Shown: positions 1-21,069 of the stretch, in pieces
How the letters are laid out: the number at the start of each line of letters is the position of its first letter
How positions within the stretch are numbered: the stretch's first letter is position 1
DNA from: Bugula neritina
Lineage: Eukaryota; Animalia; Bryozoa
Direction: 5' to 3'
Assembly (NCBI GenBank): GCA_964035545.1
Contig: CAXIUT010000034.1
Location: 1 to 21,396 of the forward strand
DNA: 21,396 bases
Notes under the pieces: generated by a model
What the model was told of the DNA's origin: nothing
What the model saw: the letters and a program-made list of their open reading frames with translations, nothing else
Database searches by the model: none
Position numbers and translations under genes: made by a program

Positions 1-696
1 TAACTTAATTAAGCATGCTAAGTTAAACTATGTGATATTCCTGATATGAAATATACTGCCAATGATCAGAACTAGCTCGGGTTGTAATCTCCAAGAGGTG
101 AACTTTGGGTTCGAGGACCTCATGTTTTTATGGGATATTATAAACAACCTGATAAAACAAGATAAACTATTACTGCTGATGGATGGGTCATGACTGGAGA
201 CGTTATTCAAATTATGCCCGTATCGAATGCATTCAAAATTATTGATAGAAAAAAAAATATTTTCAAACTTCAACAAGGATAATACATCGCTCCTGATAAA
301 GTAGAACAAGTCTATAAGAAATGTAATCTTATCAGTGATGCCTTCCTTCATGGATAAAGTATACAAAGCTTTTCAGTATTAATTGCCGTTCCCAATAAAC
401 CTTACTTTTAATCATTCGCACAAGCTAATAATATACCTGGAAGTTATTAATAACTTTGTCAAAATAAACAAATGAGAGGAATGGTTTTAAAAGAATTGAA
501 TGATTTGGCTAAAAGAGATGGACTTAACAGTTTAGAACAAGCCAAAAATATTTACTTCTAACCTGAAGGATTCGGCAATAAAAACATCATGACTAACACC
601 ATGAAAATGATCCGCCATGATGCTAAGAATTGTTATAAACCTCAAATCGATTCAATGTACTCTTAAGGAGACATCATGGCCAGCTTCAAGAAATGA
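1..696 (+). CDS. Long-chain-fatty-acid--CoA ligase (ACSL family), 5'-truncated by the window edge
   Basis: Frame 1 is open to TGA 694-696 with UAR=Glu. It reads CEVKLCDIPDMKY...PRGELWVRGPHVFMGYYK...DGWVMTGDV...IIDRKKNIFKLQQG(E=TAA 280-282)YIAPDKVE...GSYEELC, the C-terminal signature region of long-chain acyl-CoA synthetases. Confidence 0.93.
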
Positions 697-786
697 TATA
701 TCATCCATAAATAGTTATAAATAATTAAAATTATAGTCATTGATATCAAATCAGTCATTTATAAGTCATTAAATTCATAGAGATCA

Positions 787-3700
787 TCAATACCAACCAG
801 ATTAGCCCCACTCTTAACCACAATTTGGACACTTGCTACTAAAACTATTGGCAACAAACTGACAAAATGGACAAAAATATGAATTTTCAGGTTATTCTAC
901 TTTCATCTTTCTATCATTTACTGCATTATTGATATCATCGACCTCTGCAACTCCTGCAAATGCCTATTGAGCAGTTGGAAATTGATTTTAAAATTATTTT
1001 TTCTTTTATTGAGGTTGTTAAATATCCATCTCTTTACTTAACTTTTACTTCCGAAGGTTCAATATCCTTTTAATCTAACCTTATCCTACTTAACATATCA
1101 GAGATTTTTCAACATTATCGAAGTAGGGAAAATAAAATTAAAAGTATCCCTTTTATAAGTACAAAGTATAAGGAAAACCGCTTTTAAACTCAACTTTTAA
1201 CTTACTATTTGTTGTAAATTTCCATTAAATAATCCTACCTTGTTAGTTCTATTGTTAATCTATACCAACTATCACTCTGAACTCAGCCATAGCAAACTAT
1301 GACTCTTTTATATCAGTGACATTTTAAGGTATTTAATCTTTGAGGACAAAGTTTGTTGAAAAATCAAACGAAACAGGTGACCATTCACTATAAACTGGAA
1401 TAAATCCAACCAAATAAGGTTTGTTGTTAGCATTATGATGTTTCATTCTTTGCTAAGCATTTTATCCTGAATCAGATTCAACATTTTAAAATTTGTTAAT
1501 CATAGTAGCAATATCTTTAAGAGCACTTTACTTTTCTTATAAAGAAATATTTTGATGCATTTAGCTCGTTATCTTCAATGAATCATAGTTAAATTCAACT
1601 ATCCAGTCTGTATAGTTAGGATATGCTGGACATGGCCCTGGTAAATTTTAAATATAATGTGATATTGAAGGATTGATAGTCATCAACTTCAAAAGAGTGA
1701 TAATGCCTGTAAAAACAAAGTAATCTTGTTCTTTTCTGTTTGTATAAAGTAGTTAAAGGAAAGATAGGTAGATTTAATCTCCTTTTTTTTCAGATGAATT
1801 TTAATATCGACAATATCTATCATTTTGATTTTTGATAAGATACTATTCTCCTTCTTTTTAATATTTTTTCAATGCTAAAGGAACACCAAGCAACCTCTCA
1901 GTTCTTTATTTTTGAAGATAATCATCAATCATCAGCAATTGTTCCAAAATCTAAATAAAAATAAATGTACACTGACATAAATATAGATATATTATCTGTA
2001 TGATTGAATCTATTGATATTTTCCATGATATAGTTGATAATATTGTTCGTAAACTATGGATTATTTCTTGCACTAAAACTTATAATTAATGGTATCCTGT
2101 GATTGTCATATCTATCTCTAAACATCCTTCGATAGAATTAAAAGTTATTATAAGCTTTTCTTTGTAGTATAGCTTCTTCGCTATCAGGATTGACTTCTTG
2201 TTCAAATACTATCAACTCACATATTATCTATATAATCATCGAAACAGTGTTATGTTTCTGCATTGTATTTAGATAGAAAGGATAAGATGGAAACACTCCT
2301 TCAAGATGCGAATCACTTTGCATCAAAAGATGAATTAATCTTGGTCCAAATTTATTCACCTGAAACCATACTCCGAAACGCCTATCGATTTGAATCAACA
2401 TTTTAATCAGCTAAAAGAAATTAAACATCTTACTTGGATTCTTTCCCACTTACTACAAACCACTTAAGAATTTTTGAAGTAATTTTTGGATTATTTAGTT
2501 ATGAGGAAGAGGAAGCATGAAATTAGTACTAATACCACAACTAATAATCGATATCACTTTATACAAAATAGCTTTAGCAATGATTCTTACTTCTTGATCT
2601 CTGTGAATATAAATCATTTTGAATAGATTGCCTTATTTTTATTAAAGATACTAAACAGCCAATTGGTTGATAAAACTAGGTCTAAAATGACAGACATATA
2701 AGATAAATACTGATATTTTTTGAAGTTAAGAACTTTATTTACTACTTTTTTAATTATTATCTTGAATATCTCCATAATATTTTCCATCTAAATTAAGTTA
2801 TCTTCTTTGACATTCAAGTCTAAAATACCTAAAAATAACTTAAAAACTCATATCCAATTGCTATCTAATCTAATTAGGCAATCCCATAAAATTTTGATGA
2901 TAAGGTTTCATCAACTATAAAACATCTATGGTAAACTAACTAGGCATACTTATCCTATTAAGATTATCTTATAAAAATTTACTAAAAGATGGCTGCAAAA
3001 AAATCTTCTACTTCAACAAATCATAATTATCTCGATTAATCTCCTCCATAATAACCATATTACCCACCTTACTATCCAAACTCTCCTCCATATAATTCAA
3101 TTTCTCATAAATCAACATATAGGCATTATTTTTATCATTAGTTCCTTCACTCCAATTCCACCTATCAACTCGAGTATCATCAAATTTCATCCACCCCTAC
3201 TCACATTTAATCAATGAATAATAATGACCTCCCTATGAACTACCCACATGCACAACAAAACCCTTCAACTTGTATATCTATTTCTACGAACACTAATAAT
3301 TGAAATATTGTGATAGATTTAGTTCATTAGGAAATTAAATTGGATGGTCTAGCTTTATTTTATGCATAGACTATAGATCAAAAACCAAACGCTGAAGATG
3401 AATAAATAAAAAACGAGGCAATGAATTAAAACGATGGTATTTTTGGATCGTCTAAACCTTTGTATCACAAAAATCACAAAAATAGTCACAGATTATCTAA
3501 GTCTCAACAAATTTGTTTATACACTCTTAGATTGTCTTCAAGTTTTTTATTTCAACAGATAATATGTAAAATTATTACATCCTCTACTTTTTCTTAAAAC
3601 ATTTCTCACAGTTTATTATGTTCACCAAGGATCCCTTGAAGTTATTTGCCACCAAACTTTCATTATTAGTACCCTTCAGCCTCATCTATAACCTATCGAA

Positions 3701-6700
3701 TAATTGGTTCAAGAATTCATCAGCATCATGCTGCTATTTAGTATTGATAGGTTTGCCATTAAAATCAAGATAGTTAAGACAAAAATTTTAAGGAATAAGA
3801 TATATTCTTTGTCCATATGTCAACTGATAAAACATATATTGAAATTCTCTGAAAAAATCTACATTTTAATTAAGTTAGATAGCTATAATACCAGTTCTAA
3901 AAGGTATAATCATCTGTAGCTGCTGAATAACTGAATTAATGTAACATATGCAACCAAGATTAAACATACCCATTTTATTCTTACCCCTAACCACAGAATT
4001 TCTACTAAGTTTAAGATTGTCCATGATACTTGCCATGATCTTGAAATTAAAATCAAAAGGACAAATAGAATTACTCATATTATAAAGAATTTATCTGATC
4101 TATTCAGAAGAATTAGTCTCAAGAATAAATCTGATACTATTAATAGTGGATTCTTAGATGACTATAGAAGGGTTATATAGTTTTATATAATTGATAACTT
4201 TCAATTCTCCAAGTAGTATTTAGTCTGTCTCTTCAAAATGATTAATACTATTTTTGGAATATTATGATATATCTTTTTGAAATATTTTTGATATCTAAAA
4301 ATAGCGTTTATCATCTTATTAATAACTAAGAATTTTTGAAAGAACATTGAAGTATTCTTTACAATTTCTATACTTTGATTTTGAAGAATTATTTGTTATA
4401 TGAATTGAATAATATGATTCCTTAATACTTGGAACCACATTTGAAAGAAGTAAATAAAATGAGTTAAATATTGCCCTGATCTGATCATTCTAGTGGAATA
4501 TCATCTCATCAATAGTGTTAAATAATTTTATTGGCTGCTATTTTGATTGTCTCAAGATAAGATGAGCTACTATTGCTGTTGAATTTTATGCAATCCAGTT
4601 GTTTCCTTGAAGATTGTTGGTAGTTATAGCAAGATTGCATAATTTTTATATTATTTAAGTGAAAGATTATATTTTAGTGTTCTCAATAAAAGGTTAAATG
4701 TCAGCATGGCTAAGAGGACTAACATCTACATAGTTTATATTGAGTAAATTTGGTATTTTAGTCAGACTTTAACGTGATATCCTTCCCAAATTTTATAATA
4801 TAGTAATCAAAATATCATTTTTAAGATTAGAGAAGGACGTTCTTGTGAAGATCAACTCCAAAAATTGTATGTAAGCACTTTTAACAGAATATAAGTTGCT
4901 TGATTCCTTGAAACATACCTTCCATTTCTCATGATTATCCATTGGAATTTCATTAAAATAGATAGATTTCAAAAGAGTACTCAGATACCAATAATAAAGA
5001 TGGTTCCAATTTTCTTAAGAAAAGATTTATTCACTTTGTTCTTTGATAGCTTCTAATAATTTTTAATAGGTTGGTAATAAATTCAAAGTTTTGATAAGTT
5101 ATTCAGTAATTTTAGCTTTAATATTTTAATCTTTGCATGAGACAACTACATCTTTATATATTTTAAAGAAAATACCATAAATACCACCATCTTTAACTAT
5201 ATACTTTCTGAGTTAATGTTAACTTTTGAAAGATTATTCAAAACCTTTACTCTCTTAAAATAAACTTTGATAACCCAAATTGTTCAAGTTAGAAACAACC
5301 AAAGGAGAATTTTTCTGAGAAGATTGATAGTAGAAATTTAGCCATTACTAAAGAGAAAGATATTGTCCTGAACTACTATAAACACTAATTATTTATCTAA
5401 TTCTATAGTCATGGATTGATATTTCAGCTTGAATAGCTATTTTAAATATCTATGCAATATTTTAATTATAAAGTTTACCTTTTTATGCTGAAAATTTATA
5501 GTAAATCTCCTTCAAACAATCAGAAATTTCAGATCGAAACATACCATCTTTATCAAATAATTGACTCTTATCAAACCACTAGCAATCATTTGTTTAGTAA
5601 AGATCTACCGATATTTTCTTATAACCTGAAAAATTAGCAACTCTTTCCTTCATATCATTGAATTAAAGATATTTGTCTCCAAATTTTATCTTAGTTTTTT
5701 AAAAAGGTTGCTAAAAATGATTCAAAATCATACAAGTCACTTCGAATAAAGTATTATAACTTTTGACTTTTAGTTCATGCTAAGTTGTCTTATAATTTAG
5801 ATCATACCTGAAGACCTTTATCTATATTTAATAAGAATTATTCAGATATTGATAAGGTGGATAATCACCAAAACCTTTCTCATCTTCAGTTATCAATATT
5901 TATCTTGCCAAAATTAACCAACTAATAATGTTCAAAGGATCTCCATGACTTTATTCTAGCTATTCAATAACTTTTTTAAAAGTGATTTATTCTATTTTCA
6001 AAATTTATGGAGCTAAAGTATGTTTTGTGATGATATCTTGAGTTTGATAATATTATTTTGATATTAAAGGTTTGAGATTATTTCTTACATTAGGATTCAT
6101 AAGATGATATAAGTCTATAATACAATCTAAATCATGAGAACTTTTATGTTAATTATTTATCAAAGTAGAAATCATTGCTGTTTGTATTTATTCAGGATAG
6201 TATCTGATAAACTTAGCAAATTTATTATCTATTTTTATTAAATTCCAAAGTTATTTATGAGTAATAAGTTAATTATCCATTTATTAGTAACTTTATAATA
6301 GCAACATCAAGATCTTTAGATGCTTTTCTGTTTATTAAAGCTATAACTCATGAATTCTTTCTTATTTTATCAGTTTTCTTATCCCTTCATGAAGAGTTTT
6401 TCTACATTTGTTACCTATATTCTGATGATATGTCTTATCTCTCAGTTTAAAAATAAAATTCTATATCATCTGAAGATACAAAGAAGATTGAGGTTTTTTC
6501 ATCAGGAGTCTTAAAGGTGATAAAGCATTAGTATGATCATATACTCCTAGTTAAATTCCCATGATAAATATTTCATAGTAAAGAGTTATAGCTTATTTCT
6601 TGAGATTCTACCTTAGTTTTTCATAGTTTTTTTAGATTATAAGATATATTTTTTAAAGATTTTTTTATATTTAGTCAGGTGGAGTCAACAAAATAATTCT

Positions 6701-8044
6701 TTTTATCAATGAAAAAGTTTATTCATTGAAACAATTCGGTCTTGGAAGTTCTTAAATCTTTTGTAAAAGATAATTTCTATTCTTTTAAATATTATTTTCT
6801 TATAGTTTTTGAAGAGTATTAAAGAGTGATTTAGATAAATTTTAATGACATTTTTCAAGCAAATTAAAAATAAGATTGATTAAATAGTCATTAAGTGATT
6901 CATTTTTAGCCATGTATAGAAAGACTTACTCTCCTTTTGCAATTACTTCAGGATGATTATCAGCTCTAAATATTTAATCAAGAATCTTCTTATCTGCTAT
7001 AAATTATTTTATCTTTTATGTACTCACTGCAGAGGAAAAATAAACACTTTTACGACAAATTTATCCCAAAGTTTTAACTGCAAACAATTTCTTCTGAGAA
7101 ACTTCACTTTTCACAAATAAAATAATCAGTCTATTTTCTACCTACCAATGCCAAAGGTCCATATTAAATCCAGCATAGTCATTAAATCTTTAAGAAATAC
7201 TATTAACAGAAGCAGTTATACTTTAAAAATGACTTTTATTCAATAATTTTTAAACTTCCTTATGATCCAAAAGACTCAATATCTTCTATGAAACCTCTTT
7301 GATTATATTAAGCAAATAGAATGAATAAATTGGTGCATTTATATATTCTAGTAATTTTAGTAACTCAACTATGACATCCAAAGGTAGATTCATAAAGTGA
7401 GAGATAAAGTAGTTTTAAAATATCTCAGTAATAATTATTTAGGTTGCATTCATAAAAGTTTATGAAATACTTTATCTTTTTACTACCTTAAATGAGTTTG
7501 ATAAAAATTTAGCTATTATTTCATTATCAGCTGTAAAATATTATTTTGCCTATCCATGTTTCTTCTGATCAATCACATCACTCATAGCATCTTGATTGTA
7601 GTTAGCTATAATTGGAGGAGCTGCAGGACCAAAATAAGGAAGTTGCTAGGAACTTTAATCAGGTCCTGAATAAGGCAAAGCGATTGCTTCATTGCTATTA
7701 GTAGTTTTAATATTTTCTGAGGATTGTAAAAGATCTAAATTTTGTTGATTTTTAGCTTAGAACTTAATATCAGGATTGATAGCAGTTTTTATAAGTGTTA
7801 CCAACTCTGTCATTGGAACTTATTTGAACATACCACAAAGTAGTTTAACTATTCCTAGTATATAATCGGCTGAATCTGATTGTTTTGAGAGAATTGTAAT
7901 GTTTTATTAGATGACTTTCATGTTTTCTTTGATAGTTTTTGAGGTTTAAACTTTCTTGAGACGATCAACGAAGGCTTAGTAATCAATTTTCTTGGAGTTG
8001 TTCTAGGATGGTAGTAGAAAAATAGGAAACGATTCTTACTTCAT
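787..8044 (-). CDS. Large ubiquitin-specific protease (USP9X/USP24/USP34-like, peptidase C19), ~2411 aa, one 22-nt intron (1951-1972), C-terminal C4 zinc finger
   Basis: ATG at 8044. I read the frame by hand and found no in-frame TGA until the intron 1972-1951 (GTGTAC...TTTAG), whose removal restores ILEQLLMIDDYLQKERTERLLGVP. Motifs: Cys box GMFNLGCICYINSVIQQL, PINTKEQHDADEF (cf. USP9X NLREQHDALEF), EFPNELNL, His box VHVGSSEGGHYYSLIK, WMKFDD, NAYMLIYEK. Stop TGA 789-787 is followed by a second TGA. Confidence 0.92.
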
Positions 8045-8104
8045 ATCTTGAACTATTGTATAAAGAATTTATCAATATATATTAATGTTGATAATTATAA
8101 AACT
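8045..8104. promoter_or_regulatory. 60-bp divergent (bidirectional) promoter region
   Basis: An AT-rich spacer lies between head-to-head ATGs of the USP gene (8044, -) and the ESRP-like gene (8105, +). Positional inference. Confidence 0.55.
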
Positions 8105-9312
8105 ATGGATTATTTTCTGATCTTTCAATATGACTGCCTCTAATAATCCAAAGAAGGACTCCAACTTTCATCCATATAAGTCGAACTAGTCAACATCAAT
8201 GCAGATTAATTTGACCCTCAAAGCAAATTATCGTTTGCTAATTTAACTTAAGGACAATCTTTTGAAGAGTCTATCACTGCTATAACAAAGCTAATCAATA
8301 AATTAGTCCTCAATTTCACTAATGTGCAATTGATCGCATAGAATAATGACCTTTTTACTAATATTCTACCTCAATAGTTCAGTCAGAGAAAATTATCAAT
8401 GCCCTTTTATTTTACAAACTACGTCGATTGGCGGGTTCTTTGCCGCTAAAAGTTTGGAGTTGTTGCTCAGTCATTGCCTGAAATCGCCAAGTAGAAATTT
8501 AATGACAAAGACAACTTGAAATGATGGAGATCAATAACCACTTTAGCACGTTAAAAGCTATCCTAAAACGACTCAAAAATGAAGGATATCTTGAAGATAC
8601 AGACATACTATTTTCAAGGAAGCATAAAAGAACCAAATTGACAGAAAAATATTCATACTTTCGATGTTTGGGATTGCCTTTTCAAATATCGAAATCTTAA
8701 ATTGTAGAAAAGTTAATCGAACCAGAACGCTTCAACATCAAATCTTATGGACTAAGTTTGATAATATAGCATGGAAAGTTTTCAGGTAAAGCTGTTCTCT
8801 AAATTCCTGCAGCATTTACTGAAACCATTTTAAAGAAGCATCGAATGTTCATCGGGAAAAGATACATCTAGATCATCCAAGTCAGCCAGGAAGAGTACGA
8901 AAGCTACAAGTTGAAAGAAGAGAGATAGAAAGAGAATCATAGCCGGGATCCTTTTTCAAGAGGCGAAAGAAGAAAGAGAAGTCAATCAAGTTCGTCACCA
9001 TCTTATTCGCGGTCAAGGAGCCGAGAAGGGATCCAGGTTCACAGTTTGTTGAACGAGGTTGCAGTCAAAGTTCGTGGCCTTCCTTTTTCTTTGAATAACT
9101 GGGACATTGAGTAAATATTTAAACGATTCAATTTTATAAGGGGAAGTGTAAAATTGGGGTTTATGGGGGAGCGGAAAACAGGTTAGGCTGTTATATTATT
9201 TCCCAATCGTGATTAAGCCTAACGTGCCCTTTCTCTCCAAGGCTTAACTGTCCAAAGACGCTACCTCGAACTTAAGATAACTAGTAAAGACAATTATGAT
9301 CGTTTTAGATGA
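8105..9312 (+). CDS. ESRP/Fusilli-like RNA-binding protein: degenerate DEDDh-exonuclease-like N-terminus, two quasi-RRMs and an RS-rich linker, ~395 aa, intron 8491-8510
   Basis: ATG 8105; the 20-nt intron GTAGAAATTTAATGACAAAG removes the frameshift; TGA 9310-9312. qRRM1: FRCLGLPFQISKSEI...GKFSGKAVL...KHRMFIGKRYIE. qRRM2: VKVRGLPFSLNNWDIEEIF...RKTGEAVILF...RRYLEL. These are hnRNP F/H / ESRP / GRSF1-type motifs. Linker: RKRSQSSSSPSYSRSRSR. Confidence 0.8.
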
Positions 9313-9352
9313 TTCCATTATAATTTTGCATTAAGTTTATTGTTCTTAAAAG

Positions 9353-10720
9353 ATGGCTCTTTAACTAATCATTCAGTAGATCAAGGCTATTGGCAACTTA
9401 AAAGTCAAAAAAATAACTACTAACGAGGATTCATAGGAAGTAATTGATGAAGAAAGAAGGTTTCGAGTGAAGATTGGGACTTAACAATTCATATCGAAAT
9501 AGTGTGGAACATTTCTAAGTTCAAATCAAATTTTATTCAATGAACCATTCTCCTATTTATACGACAACATCTCACACTTACTTTTCATATAAATCTTCAA
9601 TAAACATCAATACTTAGATAATTCAGATTTAGACCAAGTACTCAATACTGAAATCGATCTATCAGATCTAACTAGTCTTAATGGAGATTACATTGAAACA
9701 ACTTTATTCGATATCAAAAGAGAAGCTGTTGGCAAGTTAATTTTATCAATCTAAACATTTAAAAAAGGACCTAAATATCATTAGAAAGTAAGCAGTAAAA
9801 TATTTTTCGAGGCAGTAAAGGAAGAATACGATCGTGTTCAGGCAAGCTAAGCATCAAAAAATATAAAAAATTTAATGGTAAATAATACTTTAGCTGATAC
9901 ACTAATGACAATAAGTAGTTTAACATTGATCTGTTAGAAAGAAGATATGTAGATATTTATGCGTGAAGGATTCGTGATGGTGAAATATGGTTTAACAATA
10001 AAAGCATTTAGTTCTTTAATAAAAATTCAAAGCAAATAAAATGCTAATTGGATGGATTATATGTAATTTATGAAAAATGATGGAGTCAAATTCTAATTTT
10101 TCTTTTTCCATTTTGATTAACTTGGCAATGTAACCTGCAAAGCTAAAGGATAAATCAAATATGTCATATTTGATTAAACAATTAATCTACACACTATAAC
10201 TCTATTTGATAAAAGGTCAAATAAGTATGGAGTATTGATGGTTAAATTCAATGAAAAAGAAGTCACTACTAAAGGAGCTATCAATAATAAATTTGATAAG
10301 AAACTTGCTCCTATAGAACCAGCTATTCCAGAGATCATTGAATAATTCAATAGATATAAATTTTAAAGTAAACATAATAATCATATTTTGTCATAGAAGA
10401 TGTGGGAATTGTAACAGCAAGAAAAAGCTCAACAATAGTAAAAAGAAAGACCATTAAATCCATAATAAAAAAAGAAAAAAGAAGAACATTCAAGATTTAT
10501 CAACTTTTTACAAAAATAAATGATAAGAATTTAAAGATAAATAGCAAAAAAATAACTTCATGGTAAAAAAGATGATAGAAAAAGTATGCTTTTACCTACA
10601 ATTGATAAAAAAGGAACAGATTCAAGAGTTGTAGAACAAAAAGGATAACGCTATAATCGTAAAATGAACAGCTCTTTTTCTACAAATTAAATGCCAAAAG
10701 TTAAATTACCTAAAGTATGA
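9353..10720 (+). CDS. Putative tandem C2-domain protein with a charged C-terminal tail, 455 aa, intronless
   Basis: Open frame from ATG 9353 to TGA 10718-10720. The beta-strand pattern is typical of C2 domains: LELIIQEIKA...FRVKIGTEQFISK...LFNEPFSY...LFIEIFNK...TEIDLSDL...LFDIKREAVGKLILSI. It recurs as GFVMVKYG...W...ITLFDKRSNKYGVLMVKF. The ORF is solid; the domain call is by eye. Confidence 0.65.
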
Positions 10721-10738
10721 TCTCTAAAAATATTTATA

Positions 10739-11566
10739 TCATCTTAAATTATCATCCATTAAATTTGTATCTTCAGGCTGTGAAGGACAACATTTTTACT
10801 TGATTTTTGTATAACCCAAATGAGGAAGCGACCATACATAATCAGCATAGTATATGATGTATTCAGAACTATGGAAACTTAGCATTCCGAAAAGAAAACC
10901 TCCGATTATATCGATGCTATAGTGAGTTCTCGATGCAACAAGCATCACCACCATCCAGAATATTTGGAACCAACAATATATTTTGACACAAAGATGTAGG
11001 TTTAGTTTAAGAGCTTAGAGAAGAAAGATGGTGGCTATTCCTGTATGACCAGAGAAATAGAAGTCTCTTGTGTGATCATAGGGTACCATAATTGAAGGAA
11101 ATGGTGGAGCTCTCCAGGCCATATTTTACGGAAAAGGAAAAACAAAAATATTCTTTATTAGTTGATATGTACAAGAGAAAAGGTTCTAAACACAAAAAAG
11201 AAGAGTGATGACATTGCAAGTCTGATATTATTTACTTTAAGCATCCTTAATATTGACTTATTTACCAGTAAATCATACCAGCTATTAGAGAAAAATCCAT
11301 AAACTACTGGCCAACCAAAGTTATTATCGAGATCTTATCATAGTACATAAAACGATTAATCGGGTATAGTAGCTAGTGAAAGAAGTCATATATGCAAGGT
11401 TTGGTCAGATCCATTCTGAAGATGATGCGATAGAGGAAGAAGCCAGCAGTTACTAAGAAGATAGGAATAAGTTTTAAGAAATATCCGTGTATCTGAGTGT
11501 ACCTTCTGAGTAGAGAACAAATTACTAAGTTGAAATTGAAGCTATTTTTTATAATGAACTTTGCAT
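10739..11566 (-). CDS. Sphingomyelin synthase-like / PAP2-superfamily multi-pass membrane protein, ~255 aa, three 20-nt introns (11506-11525, 11246-11265, 11153-11172)
   Basis: The spliced translation contains PFPENMAWRAPPFPSIMVPYDHTRDFYFSGHTG and VASRTHYSIDIIGG, the SMS/LPP catalytic motifs (D..FSGH, R.HY..D), plus several hydrophobic helices. ATG 11566, TGA 10741-10739. Confidence 0.85.
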
Positions 11567-12074
11567 CGGAGTTTTGATTTTTTTGAATTTACACGATTAT
11601 AATATTGGTTTATTTACTTTTATTCAAAAGAATAAATATAAATTAAACTCTTAAAAGATAGTTACATAAAAGAAAATCTTTCATTAATGATCCTGAAGAC
11701 TAAAAGAATGCTTTAGGTCAAAATATAAGAAAAATAAAATTAAATTTGGAAAAATAAGTATCAATAAATCTCTAAAATTATTGAAAAATATGATAGTTAA
11801 TCAATAGTAAGTTAAAAAATAGGACAACCTTTTTATTCCTCAATAATTTAATGATGATGCTAACATAAAATACTAAAAATGTTTTGACTATCACTAAATT
11901 TATTATCAAAAAAATATGAAGTTAGCAATCACTTTTTCAAAAAAGAAAGTTATCAGATAAGAAAAGAACTTGTCCTTTATCATTCTCTATCTTTTTAATA
12001 TCATATTCAAAGAAAAAAATCGAACAAAAAGAGAGAATTCATGTAAATAATAATTTATTAATATTATATTTCTA

Positions 12075-13928
12075 TCATTTTCTATTTCTTTCAAGAATTC
12101 CATGAATATTGGAATATTCTGCTTCTTTAATTTCCCAAAGATGAATAACTGAAGGATTAATATGCATTAACTTTTGTTTTAACTTTCGATTTTATTGCTA
12201 GATCATTCCATAATTCGAAGATTGATCTCTTAAATTAGCAGACATATCTCTCAATACAGCATTTTCTTTCATTTGTCTCTCTATCTAGGATCTCAAAAAT
12301 ACATTTTATTCTTTCATAGTCTTCAATTAATGCTCATATCGACTATAGTTCAGTTGAGCAGCTGATTGAACTTCACCTATCTTAGCTTCAGTTTTGGCAT
12401 CATTTTTTATCAAAATAGTATCTTTTTATTGAACTATTTGTTTATATTTTTGTAATTATTACATCAAATGTAATTTTTAATTTACTTATTTTTGAAATAG
12501 TTGCTATTTACTTCCTATCTTTTATTAATAATTTCTACTTTCCATTTTGATAGACTAAACTTGAAGTTTAAATCCTTCTATCATAAATTTTAAACCATCA
12601 TTTTATTTTCTTAACTCAGAATTTATTGCCATTATCTAATCTAATTACCCTCTCAATAACTTAAGTCCTACTTCCTGAGAAGGAGGAGTTTGAACTGATG
12701 TTTCTCCTAACTTTTTAACAAGTAAACTCAACTAATGCTTTTAATGCCTAATTCTATCCATTTATTTCTTTAATTACTATATCATTTTAGTATATTATTT
12801 CAATTAAACAATATTACTTTTTCTTTAATTTAACACTTTTATCTGATTTTAATAATCTTTTAACTTCCCCTAAATACCATTCATATAATTTTGCATTAAT
12901 ATTTTATCTTATTTCAATTGATTATTTTCAACTCTCAAATCAGCTATACTTCTCTTAACTACCTAAGATTCCACCATATCACTTTACAGGTTTTTTAATT
13001 AATCAACATAAGAAAAACTATCAGGCATTTTTTAAATCTCATCAAATGATTCTTTTACATTTTTTTGTGAAGATTCAATAAATCTAAGTATTTTAGAAAA
13101 TGATTTTTGAATCTATTACTATGTATCAAGATCATTTATTGTTATCTTTGTTCGCATCTTCAAGTTGCTATAGACTTTTTCATGATGGGTTGATAATTTT
13201 TTTATTTAGACTATTAAACTATCATATGGTAAGTTTAATTTCGAATGAGAAAGAGCTATAGGATTTTCACTCAATCCTTTTTGCATACTTGATTTCTATT
13301 TATTAACTTCTTCGTATTTTAGTCGATAATTTTATTTTTAAGATAACAACTATCTGATTTTCTGCTGAAGTTGTTGAATTTAATGATTAAGCTTTTTTAT
13401 TTATTAATTCTTTTTGTTTTTCTATTGTTGAAATTGCATGTTCATTCCTTTCACTACTTCTTCACCATGTAGATGTTGATTTGCGCGCGCTTACTGAGCA
13501 ACAAAATTGACTTTCTGTAAAAGAACATTTCTCTCACTCACTAGTTGCATTTAACTGTTACGTCTGACTTATAACTCCTGTTCTAGAACTTTTATTTTTT
13601 GATCTTGAAATACAAGTTTTTAATTAGATCTTTCTTTATCTTTTTACATCACCTTTCTCATTTTATTTAGTTCAGCTATTTTTTCAAGATTGACATTAGT
13701 AATATTTTTGATATAAGGTATATTCGCTTCTATATTTTAACTCATCTGTCTGAGTTAAGTTTGAGTTAAATTTGATGTTTATGCTTCATTTCTCAAAACT
13801 TTAAGTACCTAAAGCTGAGTCAGTTTAATTTTTTCAAGAGCATGTTTCAACTATGAAGTTGATTTCTTTTATTGTTTTTGTGGTATATGAGGCTAGCTTG
13901 AAAATGAATTGTTGTAAATAATACTCAT
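12075..13928 (-). CDS. Uncharacterised coiled-coil protein, 617 aa, intronless
   Basis: ATG 13928 to TGA 12077-12075, with no in-frame TGA seen. Composition is E/K/Q/L-rich and heptad-like (e.g. QDQKIKVLEQELEVRRNSEMQLVSERNVLLQK). No family recognised. Confidence 0.8.
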
Positions 13929-13951
13929 ATCTTAATAATACAACAATTTAA

Positions 13952-15784
13952 TCATTCGTATAGTATCCTTTTGATTCTTTCCACATTGTTAATTGCTGTC
14001 TTCTCAATGTTCATTTCTACTGCTTTTCCCACTAAAGAATGCTTCAAGCCTCCCTAGCTATCTTTCTTTGTACATATTCTCAATTTGTACTGTCCATACA
14101 ATCTCTTCTCAGCTTCTTCTCTCAAAAGATCCTCACTATAATGACTTAGATCTTAAATTGGAATTCCTTTGAATATTTCTTGAACAAACTCATCGAATGC
14201 TGTGGTCCATATTGATCCCGTAATATCTGATAATTCAATAGGAAGAATAAATTTTCTATGAGTTTTATCGTTATAATGACCACAGTGCATACACTTACTG
14301 AACTCATCTGTTCCTTTTTTGCATTTAGGATTGTTACAAGCTTAATAAAACCATTTACCCTTAAAACTAGTATGACTGAGCCACACTTCAAGGTCAGAAT
14401 AAATAGGATCCACATCAATAAAGCTCACTTCAGTTTATAATTATCTTATATTCTTTCCATACTTCTCTTTCCCATTAGTTGCGATCTCTTTGACGCTGTA
14501 GAAAGGTGAATAGTCATTTTCTGTTAGTTTATTTTAATAAGCTGAAAAAGGATGATTTGGGTGAGGTTTTATTTCTGACTTGAAGAGTGAATTGATAGAA
14601 CGTGTGTCTCTATAATCATTAACTTTAAAACTTTTGAGTTTAACTGTTTTATTGATCCAACTTTCTTCAATAACCATTTCTTTATTCCAAATAACAACTT
14701 CAATTGACTTTTTAATTTCAGGATCACCAATAATAAGAGCCTTCTTATAGATTGTTCTGCTATCTTTATCAAAACTTCTTTCTTATCCAATGCTAAGTAA
14801 AATTCCTACAATATCAAATTGTCTATCCAAATTCCAGGTATCATTAAGAATATCAACAAAGGACACATATGAATCTTTTGTATCTCTAGGAATAAGAGGA
14901 GTATCTTTAAGAGGAATAAATTGAGTATTTTTTGTAAAACTGATATTATATTTAGAATATTTCTATCCTCTATTCTGATTGTAACTTTCTTCTCTGATCT
15001 GTCCTCTTGATATTCTATAAATACCATAAACATGTATTATTTCATGATAGTCTTTAGCACAATCTCCAAACATAACTCCATCGATCTTCATCCCAGTTCT
15101 ATCTATCATAGTCATTGAAAATATCTTTGTTAGCTTTCCTGATTTACTGTTAAACTCTCTGTAAGATTTTTAAAGAACACGGACAACTATCTACCAAGCA
15201 CTTATGTCTGTAAACAAATCAGATATTTTATCAAAATTTTTAAGTTGATTTCCATCTAAAGATGATGGACTATTATCTTCACTCTAAACTTCAAGTTCCA
15301 TCATATCACCAGAGTTATAAACAGGCATTTTTTGAGTTGAATTTTGATAGTTGACAGGCTGAATAGCTTTATTTTTATTATAAGATATTTCCCTTTTATC
15401 AGTCATCATTTTATCTTTCTCCTAGAATTTAACTTCTTTCTTGGGAATACTAGCAGTTAGATCACTGTTAGAACGAGGATAAGATAGAGGTTTATAACTT
15501 AAGATCTCAATAAAGATTTTACTCGATTTGGTATGGGTTGTAAAAGAGTCTATTTCTATAAGGTATTTGTCCTAAGAGGGATGCTTTTGAGCATGTTTTC
15601 TGATGTCCATTTCTGGTTTATCGAGATCGATAATTCCTTTAGCTTTATCCTTTCCATCACTAATCTCTAGCTTGATAGCTTCATTGACATTTTTGAAATT
15701 GAAGACTTCAACAATGTACTTTTCATGATTACCACTTTTTTGTGATTGCATGTCTGCGATAGCGTTTTAGGTGCAAAGAGTCAT
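13952..15784 (-). CDS. RPA1: Replication protein A large subunit (RPA1/RFA1 family), 610 aa
   Basis: ATG 15784, TGA 13954-13952. N-terminal OB: IKLEISDG. DBD-A: ISDL...WEIVVRV...KIFSMTMIDRTG.KIDGVMFG...GIYRISRG. DBD-B: FDIVGIL...IGD...SIEVVIW. DBD-C with Zn ribbon: WFYEACNNPKCKK...KCMHCG...IELSDITGSIWTTAFDE. Orthology to RFA1 versus a ciliate paralog is not resolved. Confidence 0.88.
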
Positions 15785-15881
15785 TTAAGATAAATATTAT
15801 GAGCGGGATAAACCTTATAAACTATATAATAGACCGCTTTCATCGACTTTAAATATCATATTTCATATTCAATTTAAATCA

Positions 15882-16700
15882 TCAATCATTTTTCAACTCT
15901 TACTTTCCCTCTTTTCCCTTCAAATAACAATATTAACTATATTATGACTGATATACTTCTTTAGTTTGGATGAAATATTGATATACCTAAAAATAAAAAA
16001 TGACGACACCAATATAACTATTGACAACGTCAAATAAATATAAGATTACAAGTCGACCCACTTGAGGACTGGGTAGATTGGTCGATTGCATAGAGTATAG
16101 ACTAAATTATTTTAATAATACTTGCATTCATTGATGAGTAAAGAACAACTTAGCATATTACAATGAATATTCTCTATTTTTTGAAGCAGTATTTATTGAA
16201 ATAGAAATCAATTCCCAAGAGGACTAGAGGAACAACATGCAATAAGGCAAATAAAAAGAGTATTCCAGCTATATATCTTATAAAATACGTGGTTGTATTT
16301 TTCTATCTAGATCAAAAAGTAATCCCCAGTATAGAAGAGTTATAGGTACTGATAGACTAAAAGCTAATTCAAATATCACTTCAATCCAATATTTAAAATA
16401 ACATTTCCTTTTTTTTTAATTATTCTATGAGATTTTGAAGAGATCGTCTTGACAAATTAATCCAAAATATAACCAAGCTAGTTTAAGATCATGTAAGGTT
16501 AGATATTTAATCAGGATAAATATCGTTGGAGAGATTATAAGTTAGATAAAAACTAATATAGAAAGGATAACGAAGCTTATCCATCGAGTTAGTTTTAGTT
16601 TTTTTCTAGAACAGCATTGATCTCTTGATTCATGAATATCTCCAAGTTAGCTAGAATCGAAAAAATAGTTCCATAAGTTGTTCGAAGATGATCTTCTCAT
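15882..16700 (-). CDS. Multi-pass membrane protein, FAR-17a/AIG1/Rolling-stone-like, tandem paralog B, ~252 aa, three 20-nt introns (16269-16288, 16102-16121, 15937-15956)
   Basis: Spliced translation: MRRSSSNNLWNYFFDSSELGDIHESRDQCCSR...KYLTLH...IFELAFSLSVPITLLYW...LLHVVPLVLLGIDFYFN...YTLCNRPIYPVLKW. It is collinear with paralog A and shares three intron positions and phases. Ends TGA TGA. Confidence 0.8.
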
Positions 16701-16792
16701 TTAATATTTTATATTTAAAAATATCAATACTAATACATACTATAAAGAAAGATCGAATAAAAAATTAATACTATTTCATCAAAATGATTTTA

Positions 16793-17607
16793 TCAACTAT
16801 CAACTTAGTCCTAAATAACATCATGACCTGAAAACTATCTTAATAATAATAATAAAATACCTATTTAAACAATAATTAGAAGTAACAAACCTTAGAACAA
16901 GAAAAGTTACTATTACAATAGTATAGATAACAATAGCATAGATAAAAGAAATACTGTCATTCCATTTCAAAATAGGATAAATAGGCTACACTTTCAAAGT
17001 ATAAACTAAATAGATAAATTAGTACTGAAATTTATAAAGAGATAAGCTGCTCCAAATACAATAATAATCAATAATCTTGGCAACTTAAAAGTAAATCGAT
17101 TGAAAATCAAATCAATAAAGAGAAATATAATAGGAACAGAATGTTCTAAAATAAAAAGAATGAGATAAGCAGCTGAAATAAGAATTGATTACTTTTCAAT
17201 CTTTTCACATCATATGAAAACAACAAAAACCAATAAACTAAAGTAATAGGAACAGCAAAAGTGATTGCCATTTAGTAAAATAGTTCAACCCAATATTTAA
17301 GACTATTTTATCAACATTTTTACTTTAAACAAATACGCCCATTTTCAAATTTACTAAGAATAAAATCAAAAACAGCCAATCCAAAATACATCCAAGCAAG
17401 ATATAGTCCATGATGAGTCAGATATTCAACCACAACAAAAAAAGATTTGCTGATCACCACCTGCCAAAAATAAACTGCACTGATTAGCAACCATCCTATC
17501 AACCGAAACACCCATAATACGTTTCTAGAACAGCATTCAGTTCGAGGTTAGTGAATGTCTCCAAGTTACTTGCCAGAAAAGAAGTATTCCCACATCGATT
17601 GAATCAT
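16793..17607 (-). CDS. Multi-pass membrane protein, FAR-17a/AIG1/Rolling-stone-like, tandem paralog A, ~243 aa, four introns (17303-17323, 17173-17192, 17006-17025, 16839-16860)
   Basis: Spliced translation: MIQSMWEYFFSGKELGDIHEPRTECCSR...EYLTHHG...FYEMAITFAVPITLVYW...LEHSVPIIFLFIDLIFN...YTLKVEPIYPILKW. The YLT / VYW / H..P....D / PIYP.L.W pattern is typical of this superfamily. Confidence 0.8.
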
Positions 17608-17641
17608 TTTAAAATAATTCTTTAATAATAAATCAAACACA

Positions 17642-18072
17642 TCATCTATTACCAACATCTCCCAGTCCTCGAATTCTTCTTGCCAACTGCATATCTTTGC
17701 TCATTAGAGTTACTCTCTTAGCATGAAGAGAACAGAGATAAGAATCTTCGAAAAGACCAACCATGTAATTTTAGGCACTAACTTGAAGAGCCTCCATTCC
17801 AAAGAAGTCCAACGCTTCTTATCTTCAAGAATATCAGTACAAATCTCTTTCACTAGTTTGTGGAAAGTTGATTTTGGCATGAGAAGATCAGTTGAATTTT
17901 GAAGGCGTTTGATATGAGCTAAATGTGCATTTCTATTCTTCATTTTTTGTTGAAAAACAAATGGATTTTGACGCGCTTAGTGCTTCATTATCTATTTCTT
18001 GTTTGAAGTCGGTTTTAAAGGATTGAAACGTGGAACTCCGATACTCTTTCTTGAACCGCCCTTCTTATCCAT
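17642..18072 (-). CDS. Centromeric histone H3 variant (CenH3/CENP-A-like), ~143 aa, with a 1-nt frameshift at 17801-17803 (sequence error, pseudogene or recoding)
   Basis: ATG 18072, then a divergent basic tail and [41 protein letters not shown] second frame continues [45 protein letters not shown] to TGA 17644-17642. CenH3 hallmarks: H3 Q68 replaced (FHKL), RF->RW, loop 1 one residue longer, FEDTN->FEDSY. Confidence 0.82.
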
Positions 18073-18383
18073 TTTAATTTAAATTATCAGTTGTTTTGTC
18101 ATTCAAGTCAAATTAGTCAAAATATCACAAATCAAAAATATTCATAAATAAAATCCTTTGATGCTCTTTGAACTTTAATATCATCGTCAACTGATTTAGC
18201 AATAAATATTAAGATATTTAAAAGGAAAGTAATGCTAGCTAAATTTAATCAAAATGTTTATCACAGAGTTTAAATCTTAGATAAAATTAGAGAATATTTC
18301 AAGTCTTGTTTTCAATAGACTCATAATTCACATAGTTTCTTACATTAGAATAATTTAATAATAGATAATTAAAATCATACAAA

Positions 18384-19898
18384 ATGAATCTTATTACAAT
18401 CTTGCTAATCTTCACTTCCCTTCTTTTCACTCATTCTATCAGAGTCGATCCTTAAAACTCACTCTTCGTAGATCAATACAACAGATATAGCATCTTCCAT
18501 GGAGTCAATGCTGTCTACAAAACACATCCTTTTCATCCTAACCTAGTAGAATTCTCAACGAACAGCAGTCTGACCGACCATGATCTTTTGAACCTTAAAA
18601 ACTGGGGCATGAATGCCATCAGACTACACGCTGCCTGGTAAGGAGTTGAGCCTTAAAGAGGAGTTTATAATTATACATATGTAGAAACATTAAGATAAAT
18701 AGTCCAAAAATGCAATAAATTTGGTATCTCAGTCATTCTCGATGCCCATCAAGATTTGTTTACAAAGCAGTTTTGTGGTTAAGGATTACCTGTTTGGGTT
18801 GCTAAAAGATAAACATTTCCAGCACCTCTTAAAGTCAAACTCAGATATGACTAAAAGGGATTTCCTCTTATCGAAGACTGTCTTAAAATATAATTTGCTG
18901 AATACTATCTTACATATGATCTCATGAAATTCCAAAAAGATCTATTTTCAAATTAAAGAGGACTTCTCGATCATCTCTGTAAATTTTGGGAACTTATTAC
19001 AGCCTATGTAGGTAGTGAGCCCAACCTCATTGGATATTAATTTATCAACTAACCAATAGGAGCAGATGCTTATGTCAATCCAGGTGATACAATTCTTCCT
19101 GGAGAATCTAATAGTAAATATTTGTTACCAGCTTATAAAAGAATTTTACAATCTATAAGAAAACTTGATAAAAAGACTCCTATTTTCTTTGAACCAAGTG
19201 TTATCGATGTTTTTGGGGGAGGATTTGTAGATACTCCTGGAGGAAATGATCAACTATAAACTCAAGTTTTCAGTTATCATGTCTACTGCCCACTAGTGAC
19301 TAAACTTGGAGAACCTGTATCTACCAAAGTATGTCAAGCATTTGATGCTCTTGAAGTAGCTTCTAAATAACAAAATGTAAATTCAATGAAGATAGGTGGT
19401 TTTTTGACAGAATTTGGTGCTCTTTCAAACAGCATCAAAAGTGCAGAATAAATAACAACAATAACTGACTTCACAGAAATGCATTTTAGAAGTTGGACTT
19501 ATTGGCAATTTAAATACTACAATGATATCACAACTGCTGCTCGACCTGGGACTACCTAATCTTTTTACGATGAGTATGGAAATCTTCAAAGTAATAAAGT
19601 TAAAGCTCTTGCCAGACCTTATGCATATTCTATTTGTGGAATTCCAATAAGTTAGTCTTTCAAAAAAGGAGTATTTACTCTTAAATGGGTTGCTAGTGAT
19701 GATTGTTATAACAAAAAGACTTAACTCTTTATGAGCGACTCTTTCTATTATCCAGCTGGCATGAATGTAAAATTTACAAAAAATTGTGAAAATTGTTCAG
19801 TTAAACTACTAAAAGGATAATAATTAAATTTCTATGAAGTACATTTGAGTTCTAAATCACTGGGAAAGACTATATCAGTAACAATATCTCCAAAATGA
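18384..19898 (+). CDS. Secreted/lysosomal glycoside hydrolase family 5, endoglycoceramidase-like, 504 aa, intronless
   Basis: Signal-peptide-like MNLITILLIFTSLLFTHS, then FHGVNAVYK, WGMNAIRL..AWEGVEPERGVYNYTY and ILDAHQD...FCGEGLP. The acid/base motif is GYEFINEP (Glu=TAA 19050-19052). Further motifs: FFEP, SYHVYC, nucleophile FLTEFGA, SWTYWQFK, LARPYA. TGA 19896-19898. Confidence 0.93.
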
Positions 19899-19919
19899 TA
19901 ATGATATAAATCATAAGAA

Positions 19920-21069
19920 TCAATTTTACTAAATCATTTTATCTTCTTGAATATCAAGAACAAGCTATCCTTCTTCTTCCTCTTCAAGGCACATCTTTTC
20001 CTCTTTACTCTTATCAAAAGAAAAACCTAAATAAAATCATAATATACCTTCATAAGCCTTACCTTCCTCAGACTTAAGCGAAGCATCATTGTAGGATTAT
20101 ACCTAACATTGTGTAAATTCAGGATCAAAATTTGATACATCAGAATATGATTTAACAAGAGGAATAAATGGAGCTTTCAATTTTTTATTTTATAAAGCTG
20201 TCCAATTTATACTTTAAAACCATGGATGATTTTTTATTTCAGTTGACCCATTTTTACTGCCAAGGCGATTATCAGGTTTTTTCTGGAATAGCCCTTCAAG
20301 AAGATTTCTCAATTTATGGCTAACATAGGGAGGAATATTAGGATTACTAAATTTGATTTTATCGAAAAGTTAAGGTCGACTTTTGGAATAGAAAGGAGGC
20401 AAACCTACAACCATTTCATAGATCAAAGAACCAAGACACCACCAATCAACTGGTTTACCATGTCCTTGTTTATATAAAATCTAAGGTGCCAAGTATTCAG
20501 GAGTTCCGCAAACAGAATAAGCATTGCTATCTGCAACTTCCATTTTTGAAAGTCCAAAATCAGTTAGTCTGAGATACCCTGCCTCATCAATCAGAATGTT
20601 TTCAGGTTTTAAACTATATTATCAAAAATTTACTCTCGATAAATAATATCTCTGCCATGTAGATATTAGATAGCTAGAATGATTTGAGCTGCATAAAATT
20701 TGGTTCTGACTAAGGGTATAAGTACTGTTATTCTGAGAGTCTTTGCTTTTTCGAGAGAAGACCAAAAAGTTATCCACCTGGGCAGTATTCAAGAATGAAG
20801 AAAAGTTTTTTTTAATTTTGGAAAGAGTTGTAAAGTTTAACAATGAAAGGATGATTCATACCAACAAGGATGTTACGTTCTGTCATCACATGATTTTATT
20901 GTTTTCTTTTTTATATGTATTTTTTCTTGAGAATCTTCATAGCATAAACTTTATCTGAGTCTTCTCCTTTCTTCTTGACGAGGACCACCTTAGCATAAGA
21001 ACCTTTGCCAATAACAGAGAGAAGGTTAAATTTATCAAGAGTTAACAGCTGCTGACTGGTGATTTACAT
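19920..21069 (-). CDS. AGC-group Ser/Thr protein kinase (Akt/SGK/S6K-like catalytic core, no PH domain), ~362 aa, introns 20706-20725, 20614-20633, 20027-20047
   Basis: [51 protein letters not shown] (split by an intron), [19 protein letters not shown] (last E=TAG 20483-20481), [19 protein letters not shown] and hydrophobic motif YEGFSF. TGA 19922-19920. Confidence 0.95.

Follow-up and report, generated by a model that had tools for sequence, protein, structure and literature searches.

Two peritrich ciliates, Campanella umbellaria and Carchesium polypinum, have been reported to read UAA and UAG (together UAR) as glutamate and to terminate translation at UGA, a code described as having a single origin in Peritrichia (PMC10553269, PMC11687900). 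Here, we analyzed positions 1 to 21,396 of contig CAXIUT010000034.1 from the Bugula neritina assembly GCA_964035545.1 (the whole stretch, 21,396 nucleotides, is referred to as the window), and we conclude that it is a macronuclear chromosome end from a ciliate in which UAA and UAG encode glutamate and UGA is the sole terminator, matching the peritrich code (NCBI translation table 30). We put the probability of this reading at about 93%. The window shares with the peritrich code the meaning of UAA, UAG, and UGA, the standard meaning of the other codons, and the low-GC ciliate macronuclear DNA, and no difference in code was found. The code is therefore already known, and the window confirms it cleanly. 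Tetrahymena thermophila reads UAR as glutamine (PMC10553269), and the corresponding code of Tetrahymena, Paramecium, and Oxytricha (table 6) agrees with the window in having sense UAR codons and UGA as the only stop, but inserts glutamine where the window has glutamate. Oligohymenophorea sp. PL0344 (PMC10553269) also reads UAG as glutamate and stops at UGA, and it would belong to the same ciliate class if the window organism is a peritrich, whereas its UAA means lysine; UAA in the window means glutamate and is interchangeable with UAG. The Blastocrithidia code (table 31; UAR as glutamate, UGA as tryptophan; PMC12153298) has the same glutamate assignment, but Blastocrithidia is a trypanosomatid with a sense UGA, whereas the window belongs to a telomere-capped ciliate chromosome in which UGA is not a sense codon and UAA was never seen to terminate.

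The GC content of the window is about 29%, and its 3′ end consists of (GGGGTT)n from position 21314 to the last base (21396). Because of this terminal telomere, the DNA is ciliate macronuclear DNA. The G4T2 repeat is typical of Tetrahymena, whose telomere is thus of the same type as that of the window, and of Paramecium, both of which belong to the same class as the peritrichs. Together with the tiny introns described below, the G4T2 telomere marks a ciliate. When only TGA was treated as a stop, long reading frames opened on both strands, every one of them rich in in-frame TAA and TAG. The features that bear on the code are the following:

1–696, forward strand: long-chain acyl-CoA synthetase-like gene, 3′ part (12 TAA, 1 TAG; TGA at 694–696), with TAA 280–282 in a QG-E-Y/F motif; from the translation and solved homologues
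1925–8044, reverse strand: USP9X-like giant deubiquitinase gene (USP), intronless, first ATG at 8044, TGA at 1925–1927; from a UCH Pfam match on the Cys box, USP9X and USP47 alignments, and an orthologue in the relative L001 (see below)
8521–9312, forward strand: gene encoding two hnRNP F/H-type qRRM domains, TGA at 9310–9312; from structure alignments with hnRNP H, hnRNP F, and RBM12
9296–10720, forward strand: conserved gene, function not assigned (frame 9095–10720 with 29 TAA and 8 TAG; TGA at 10718–10720); from an L001 orthologue with 59% identity
12075–13955, reverse strand: gene of a coiled-coil protein (frame 12075–14003 with 41 TAA and 17 TAG; TGA at 12075–12077); from the translation and an L001 orthologue
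13952–15862, reverse strand: RPA1, replication protein A large subunit (11 TAA, 6 TAG; TGA at 13952–13954); from Pfam matches of pieces to REPA_OB_2 and Rep_fac-A_C and an L001 orthologue
16131–16775 and 17314–17700, reverse strand: two tandem membrane-protein paralogues, 42% identical over 95 residues; from self-BLAST with codon pairs
18384–19898, forward strand: secreted GH5 glycosidase gene, 504 codons, intronless (18 TAA, 1 TAG; TGA at 19896–19898); from a homologue search, alignment columns, and a profile test
20037–21069, reverse strand: AGC-family protein kinase gene, 330 codons (11 TAA, 2 TAG), two introns, TGA at 20037–20039; from a spliced model and PKA alignment
21314–21396, forward strand: telomere, (GGGGTT)n with two GGGGGTT units, end of the macronuclear chromosome; read from the sequence

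The two GGGGGTT units amid the GGGGTT repeats could reflect natural variation of the repeat or an error in sequencing.

Meaning of TAA and TAG

That TAA and TAG both encode glutamate had originally been predicted from the letters of the window, and three independent lines of evidence agree on it, namely the comparison with standard-code homologues, the exchange of codons with a syntenic relative, and strain differences that were exclusively synonymous. For the comparison with standard-code homologues, a 61-residue stop-free piece of the GH5 gene was used as query and gave 363 proteins at E ≤ 0.001. The full gene, translated with X at TAA and TAG, was aligned to 46 matches of 300–800 residues; BLAST showed that it matches its homologues end to end, with its TGA at their C-terminus. 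TAA 19050, at the N-E-P position, corresponded to Glu in 43 of 44 homologues, and TAA 18780 in 40 of 46. TAA 19038 faced Glu in 35 and Asp in 9 homologues, and at three more TAA columns, Glu was the commonest residue (17, 26, and 21 sequences). The original prediction had proposed a Codetta-style inference from codons and profiles, and we carried this out with the GH5 gene. The column log-odds, summed over 16 TAA columns, were +14.0 nats for Glu, in comparison to −2.0 for Gln and −4.4 for Ser, and no GH5 TAA was found at a column dominated by Gln or Lys, the residues that had been named as the ones to speak against glutamate. As a control, 36 of the 39 sense codons with n ≥ 5 columns were recovered by the same procedure; AAG, CTC, and GCC were missed.

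Solved structures were searched with typed peptides of 63–85 residues that carried X at each TAA or TAG. In the kinase, SGK1 and PKA have the AP-E glutamate opposite TAG 20483–20481. In the qRRM protein, TAG 8869–8871 aligns with the RY(I/V)-E glutamate of hnRNP H and F, and a TAG in the second qRRM aligns with the TG-E-A glutamate of hnRNP H and RBM12. In the USP, TAG 3736–3734, which precedes QHDA-EF, is opposite a Glu of USP9X and an Asp of USP47, and two further TAG codons are opposite Asp/Glu and Glu/Val. With respect to TAA, all four of the adenylation-domain structures shown have the QG-E-F glutamate opposite codon 280–282, TAA codons of the kinase coincide with Glu at GG-E-LF and A(L/I)-E-YLH of PKA, and a TAA of the qRRM protein coincides with Glu at SK-E-IV of hnRNP H and F. 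The kinase TAA at RP-x-LF faces Glu in SGK1 and Gln in PKA. At loop positions, TAA and TAG are opposite mixed residues, which is what surface glutamates would show.

All six in-frame codons that had been cited for the prediction are present (TAA 19050, 18780, and 280; TAG 8869 and, on the reverse strand, 20483 and 3736). A further TAA, in the USP motif E-FP, had also been cited. USP47 and USP46 have Thr or Val at this position, there is no conserved Glu column in the structures shown, and the codon is of the same variable kind as those in the loops. The tandem paralogues had served as an internal control with two codon pairs. The pair CAT GAA versus CAC TAA is correct, but the second pair is actually TCA TAG (16427) versus TTT GAA (17346) and does not contain the TAC TAA that had been given. 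In the self-BLAST, the TAA and TAG codons of the paralogues align with TAA, GAA (twice), CAG, TGT, and AGG.

A scan with an 82-residue RPA1 piece returned a single locus, the metagenome contig Ga0302186_10000831 (L001). It carries orthologues of RPA1 (42% identical), the coiled-coil protein (32%, 612 residues), the gene of unassigned function (59%), and the USP (44–47%, about 1,338 codons), which are open only with TGA as stop, as in the window. The order of these genes is related, and gene order is thus partly conserved across a deep divergence (32–59% protein identity). Because such a distant relative has the same code, UAR as glutamate is a trait of a deep clade. The four genes gave 2,976 aligned codon pairs. 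The partners of window TAA (n = 149) were GAA/GAG in 34%, TAA in 22%, and TAG in 7% (TAR together 29%), followed by codons for Asp (7%), Lys (7%), and Tyr (5%). Window TAG (n = 47) was paired with GAA/GAG in 30%, with TAG in 15%, and with TAA in 13% (TAR 28%), and window GAA (n = 123) with GAA/GAG in 38%, with TAA in 15%, and with TAG in 5% (TAR 20%). TAA and TAG faced each other in 10 + 6 = 16 pairs. Because of these partner distributions, TAA, TAG, GAA, and GAG form one exchange class.

The partner distribution of each stop codon was also compared, by likelihood, with the distribution observed for each amino acid. For both codons and in both directions, Glu was best, and Lys and Tyr were outside the top five. 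For the window codons, Asp and Gln were, relative to Glu, at −61.8 and −81.1 nats for TAA and at −17.6 and −21.3 nats for TAG, and the lead of Glu for TAG was still 11.5 nats when only sense partners were considered. In the leave-one-codon-out control, 29 of 31 sense codons were recovered, with ATG being assigned to Leu and CAT to Asn. For the other 61 codons, the standard meaning holds, as judged from the well-sampled sense codons in both controls (36 of 39 and 29 of 31), with misses that were low-count or conservative.

The third line of evidence came from contigs of public runs, which were compared with window positions 2000–7999 and thus with the USP. A 5.2-kb contig of run X3 spans 2000–7060 without gaps and has 88 differences in 5,061 positions (1.7%), 40 of which were listed. 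None of these 40 differences changes an amino acid of the USP frame; 38 are at third positions and two at first positions (Leu to Leu and Arg to Arg). One is an exchange of TAG for TAA, and a first-position change from TAA to GAA was not among the 40. As all of the listed differences were synonymous, this TAA- and TAG-rich frame is translated and under strong purifying selection. A pseudogene or non-coding DNA was rejected on account of the synonymous-only variation and the conservation of the orthologue. The differences at 2089–2165 are synonymous in the USP frame and mostly non-synonymous in an overlapping frame (787–2211, reverse strand), and the USP therefore extends to the TGA at 1925. 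Minor-allele contigs of run X1 at 4514–4571, 5450–5552, and 5845–5915 carry identical variants. The 40 synonymous changes indicate that purifying selection is unusually strong on the whole 2,048-codon USP, the poorly conserved N-terminal region included.

TGA termination, introns, and codon usage

The view that TGA is the sole stop was borne out for this one window by all ten reading frames examined, which terminate on TGA, and by the 4,732 confirmed coding codons of the window, which contain 37 TGG and not a single in-frame TGA. The TGA-free frame of the USP (1925–8071, reverse strand) alone comprises 2,048 codons with 97 TAA and 40 TAG (137 together) and no internal TGA, whereas about 40 TGA would be expected from the base composition (P ~ 7e-18); the other two frames of this strand contain 67 and 88. 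The TGA of RPA1 (13952–13954) aligns with the TGA stop of its L001 orthologue, and the reading frames of the 9296–10720 gene and its L001 orthologue stop at the same aligned position. In the 1,338-codon alignment of the USP orthologues, no TGA was found in either species. From a six-frame BLAST with all stops masked, which gave mostly wrong-frame noise, only the USP pair and the RPA1 stop were used. As the USP starts at a Met that is conserved in L001, no read-through of the upstream TGA is needed. Selenocysteine or tryptophan at TGA was considered and rejected for this window.

The frame breaks of the kinase gene are due to two introns of 20 nt each, which interrupt it at 20725–20706 and 20633–20614 (reverse strand) and have GT..AG borders, ending in TAG or CAG. 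With the introns spliced out, a gapless match to PKA extends over 73 residues across both junctions (E 1.5e-24). The 6.1-kb USP gene and the RPA1 and GH5 genes are intronless; introns are very few and very short here.

Glutamate is encoded in the confirmed coding sequence by 209 TAA, 168 GAA, 75 TAG, and 50 GAG codons. TAA is thus the commonest Glu codon, and TAA and TAG together account for 57%. TAA and TAG are not rare recodings.

Alternative codes and the identity of the organism

The competing explanations concern the amino acid of TAA and TAG, the role of UGA, and the organism. A code with glutamine at TAA and TAG, as in Tetrahymena and Paramecium (table 6), would be the UAR reassignment most often seen in ciliates, and it has been proposed as ancestral in Oligohymenophorea (PMC10553269). 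It would also suit single sites, such as the Gln at RP-x-LF in PKA, the Gln at AFV-Q-F in the second qRRM of hnRNP H, and the one paralogue TAA that aligns with CAG. However, Gln was 16 nats under Glu in the GH5 profile and 81 (TAA) and 21 (TAG) nats worse in the exchange test, it is absent from the nine commonest partners of TAA, and the invariant Glu motifs N-E-P, AP-E, GG-E-LF, and RYI-E are spelled with TAA or TAG, which makes this code extremely improbable. The chance is just as minute for a split code with UAA as lysine and UAG as glutamate. Such a code does occur in the same class in PL0344 (PMC10553269), and the TAG data taken alone would be compatible with it, but TAA is found at Glu columns, Lys is outside the top five with 7% of the partners versus 34% for GAR, and TAA and TAG interchange, as seen in the 10 + 6 pairs and in one strain difference. 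The Mesodinium code (table 29), in which UAR means tyrosine, was rejected, as Tyr is the partner of only 5% of TAA and is outside the top candidates. A code without any dedicated stop, in which UAR is glutamate, UGA is tryptophan inside genes, and termination depends on context (Condylostoma or Blastocrithidia type), is very unlikely: 37 TGG and no TGA in 4,732 codons, together with the TGA-free USP alignment, are at variance with tryptophan at UGA, the frame shifts of the kinase are explained by its two introns, and the USP requires no read-through.

The organism could also read UAR as glutamate and not be a peritrich, which would imply an independent origin of this code in another ciliate lineage. 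The telomere does not favor this view, as its G4T2 repeat is the type found in Tetrahymena and Paramecium, which are in one class with the peritrichs, and neither does the relative with 32–59% protein identity, in which the same code appears as a deep-clade trait. Independent reassignments of stop codons have been frequent in ciliates (PMC10553269, PMC11687900), which speaks for such an origin, but UAR as glutamate has been reported among ciliates only for Peritrichia, with an inferred single origin (PMC10553269). The GC content of 29% is also inside the range of 25.02–46.29 mol% found for seven peritrich genomes and near the values of two of them, 25.02 and 27.42 mol% (PMC12411067). We therefore consider a non-peritrich ciliate unlikely. 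The G4T2 telomere, the low GC content, the literature, and the code that is shared across a deep divergence are in keeping with a peritrich. A small residual chance is left for a ciliate outside Peritrichia or a deep unsampled branch with a second origin of UAR as glutamate, or for an occasional additional decoding of UGA as tryptophan.

With UAR as glutamate and UGA as terminator, and in analogy to published codes (PMC10553269), the decoding of UAA and UAG would be carried out by tRNAs derived from tRNA-Glu with UUA and CUA anticodons, and the release factor eRF1 would no longer recognize UAR and would be restricted to UGA. Several points have to be weighed against our assignment. ARAGORN scans of the window and of L001 gave no tRNA genes, and neither of them contains an eRF1 gene, which means that the decoding machinery was not seen there. 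There is no rRNA within the window, and the term peritrich is based on the code, the telomere type, the GC content, and the literature. Where columns are variable, many residues are found opposite TAA and TAG, as with any Glu codon, and one paralogue TAA faces CAG. The evidence for TAG from standard-code homologues consists of about a dozen sites that were judged by eye in structure alignments and not by a large profile. In addition, the meaning of TAA and TAG and the termination at TGA are read from the comparison of DNA and protein sequences.

Annotation and further features of the window

The main value of these results is in annotation; they also show that former stop codons can be the majority of the Glu codons, in a code that is common to the relative with 32–59% identity. 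The original prediction had warned against the use of table 1 or table 6, and this warning is apt. With table 1, every gene of the window is split into pieces of 15–80 residues. With table 6, about 6% of all residues, corresponding to 57% of the glutamates, are written as glutamine, including those of the catalytic or structural motifs N-E-P, AP-E, and GG-E-LF. Such mis-annotation is a live problem, as in a 2025 study, the genes of seven peritrich genomes were predicted by AUGUSTUS that had been trained on Tetrahymena thermophila (PMC12411067).

Pfam searches were carried out with stop-free pieces and served for the naming of genes, not for codon inference. They gave weak matches or none because these pieces are only 38–88 residues long. 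Two features remain to be added to the above list:

about 10739–11700, reverse strand: PAP2-like membrane protein gene
17713–17976, reverse strand: histone-fold piece with a weak Pfam core-histone match

In the window, the qRRM gene and the PAP2-like gene are located between the USP and the coiled-coil gene, and both are absent from L001. At 13952–13955, the letters ATGA contain both the first ATG of the coiled-coil gene and the TGA of RPA1, and L001 has ATGATT at the RPA1 stop (about 10836–10842). As the spacing between the two genes is zero and conserved, the promoter of the downstream gene would be inside RPA1, or both genes would be expressed together.

The match of the 88-residue stop-free piece at 17713–17976 to the core-histone family had an E-value of 2.3e-5, which is under the curated cut-off, and 60 residues of this gene frame (window 17650–17821) are 68% identical to L001 (about 8280–8872). 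The gene may encode a divergent H3-like or centromeric histone.

The TGA-delimited frame 787–2211 (reverse strand), which contains 30 TAA and 8 TAG, overlaps the 3′ end of the USP frame. As the overlap belongs to the USP, the gene at 787–1924 (reverse strand) must start below 1925. Its product ends in a zinc-ribbon-like tail with the pattern Cys-x2-Cys ... Cys-x2-Cys.

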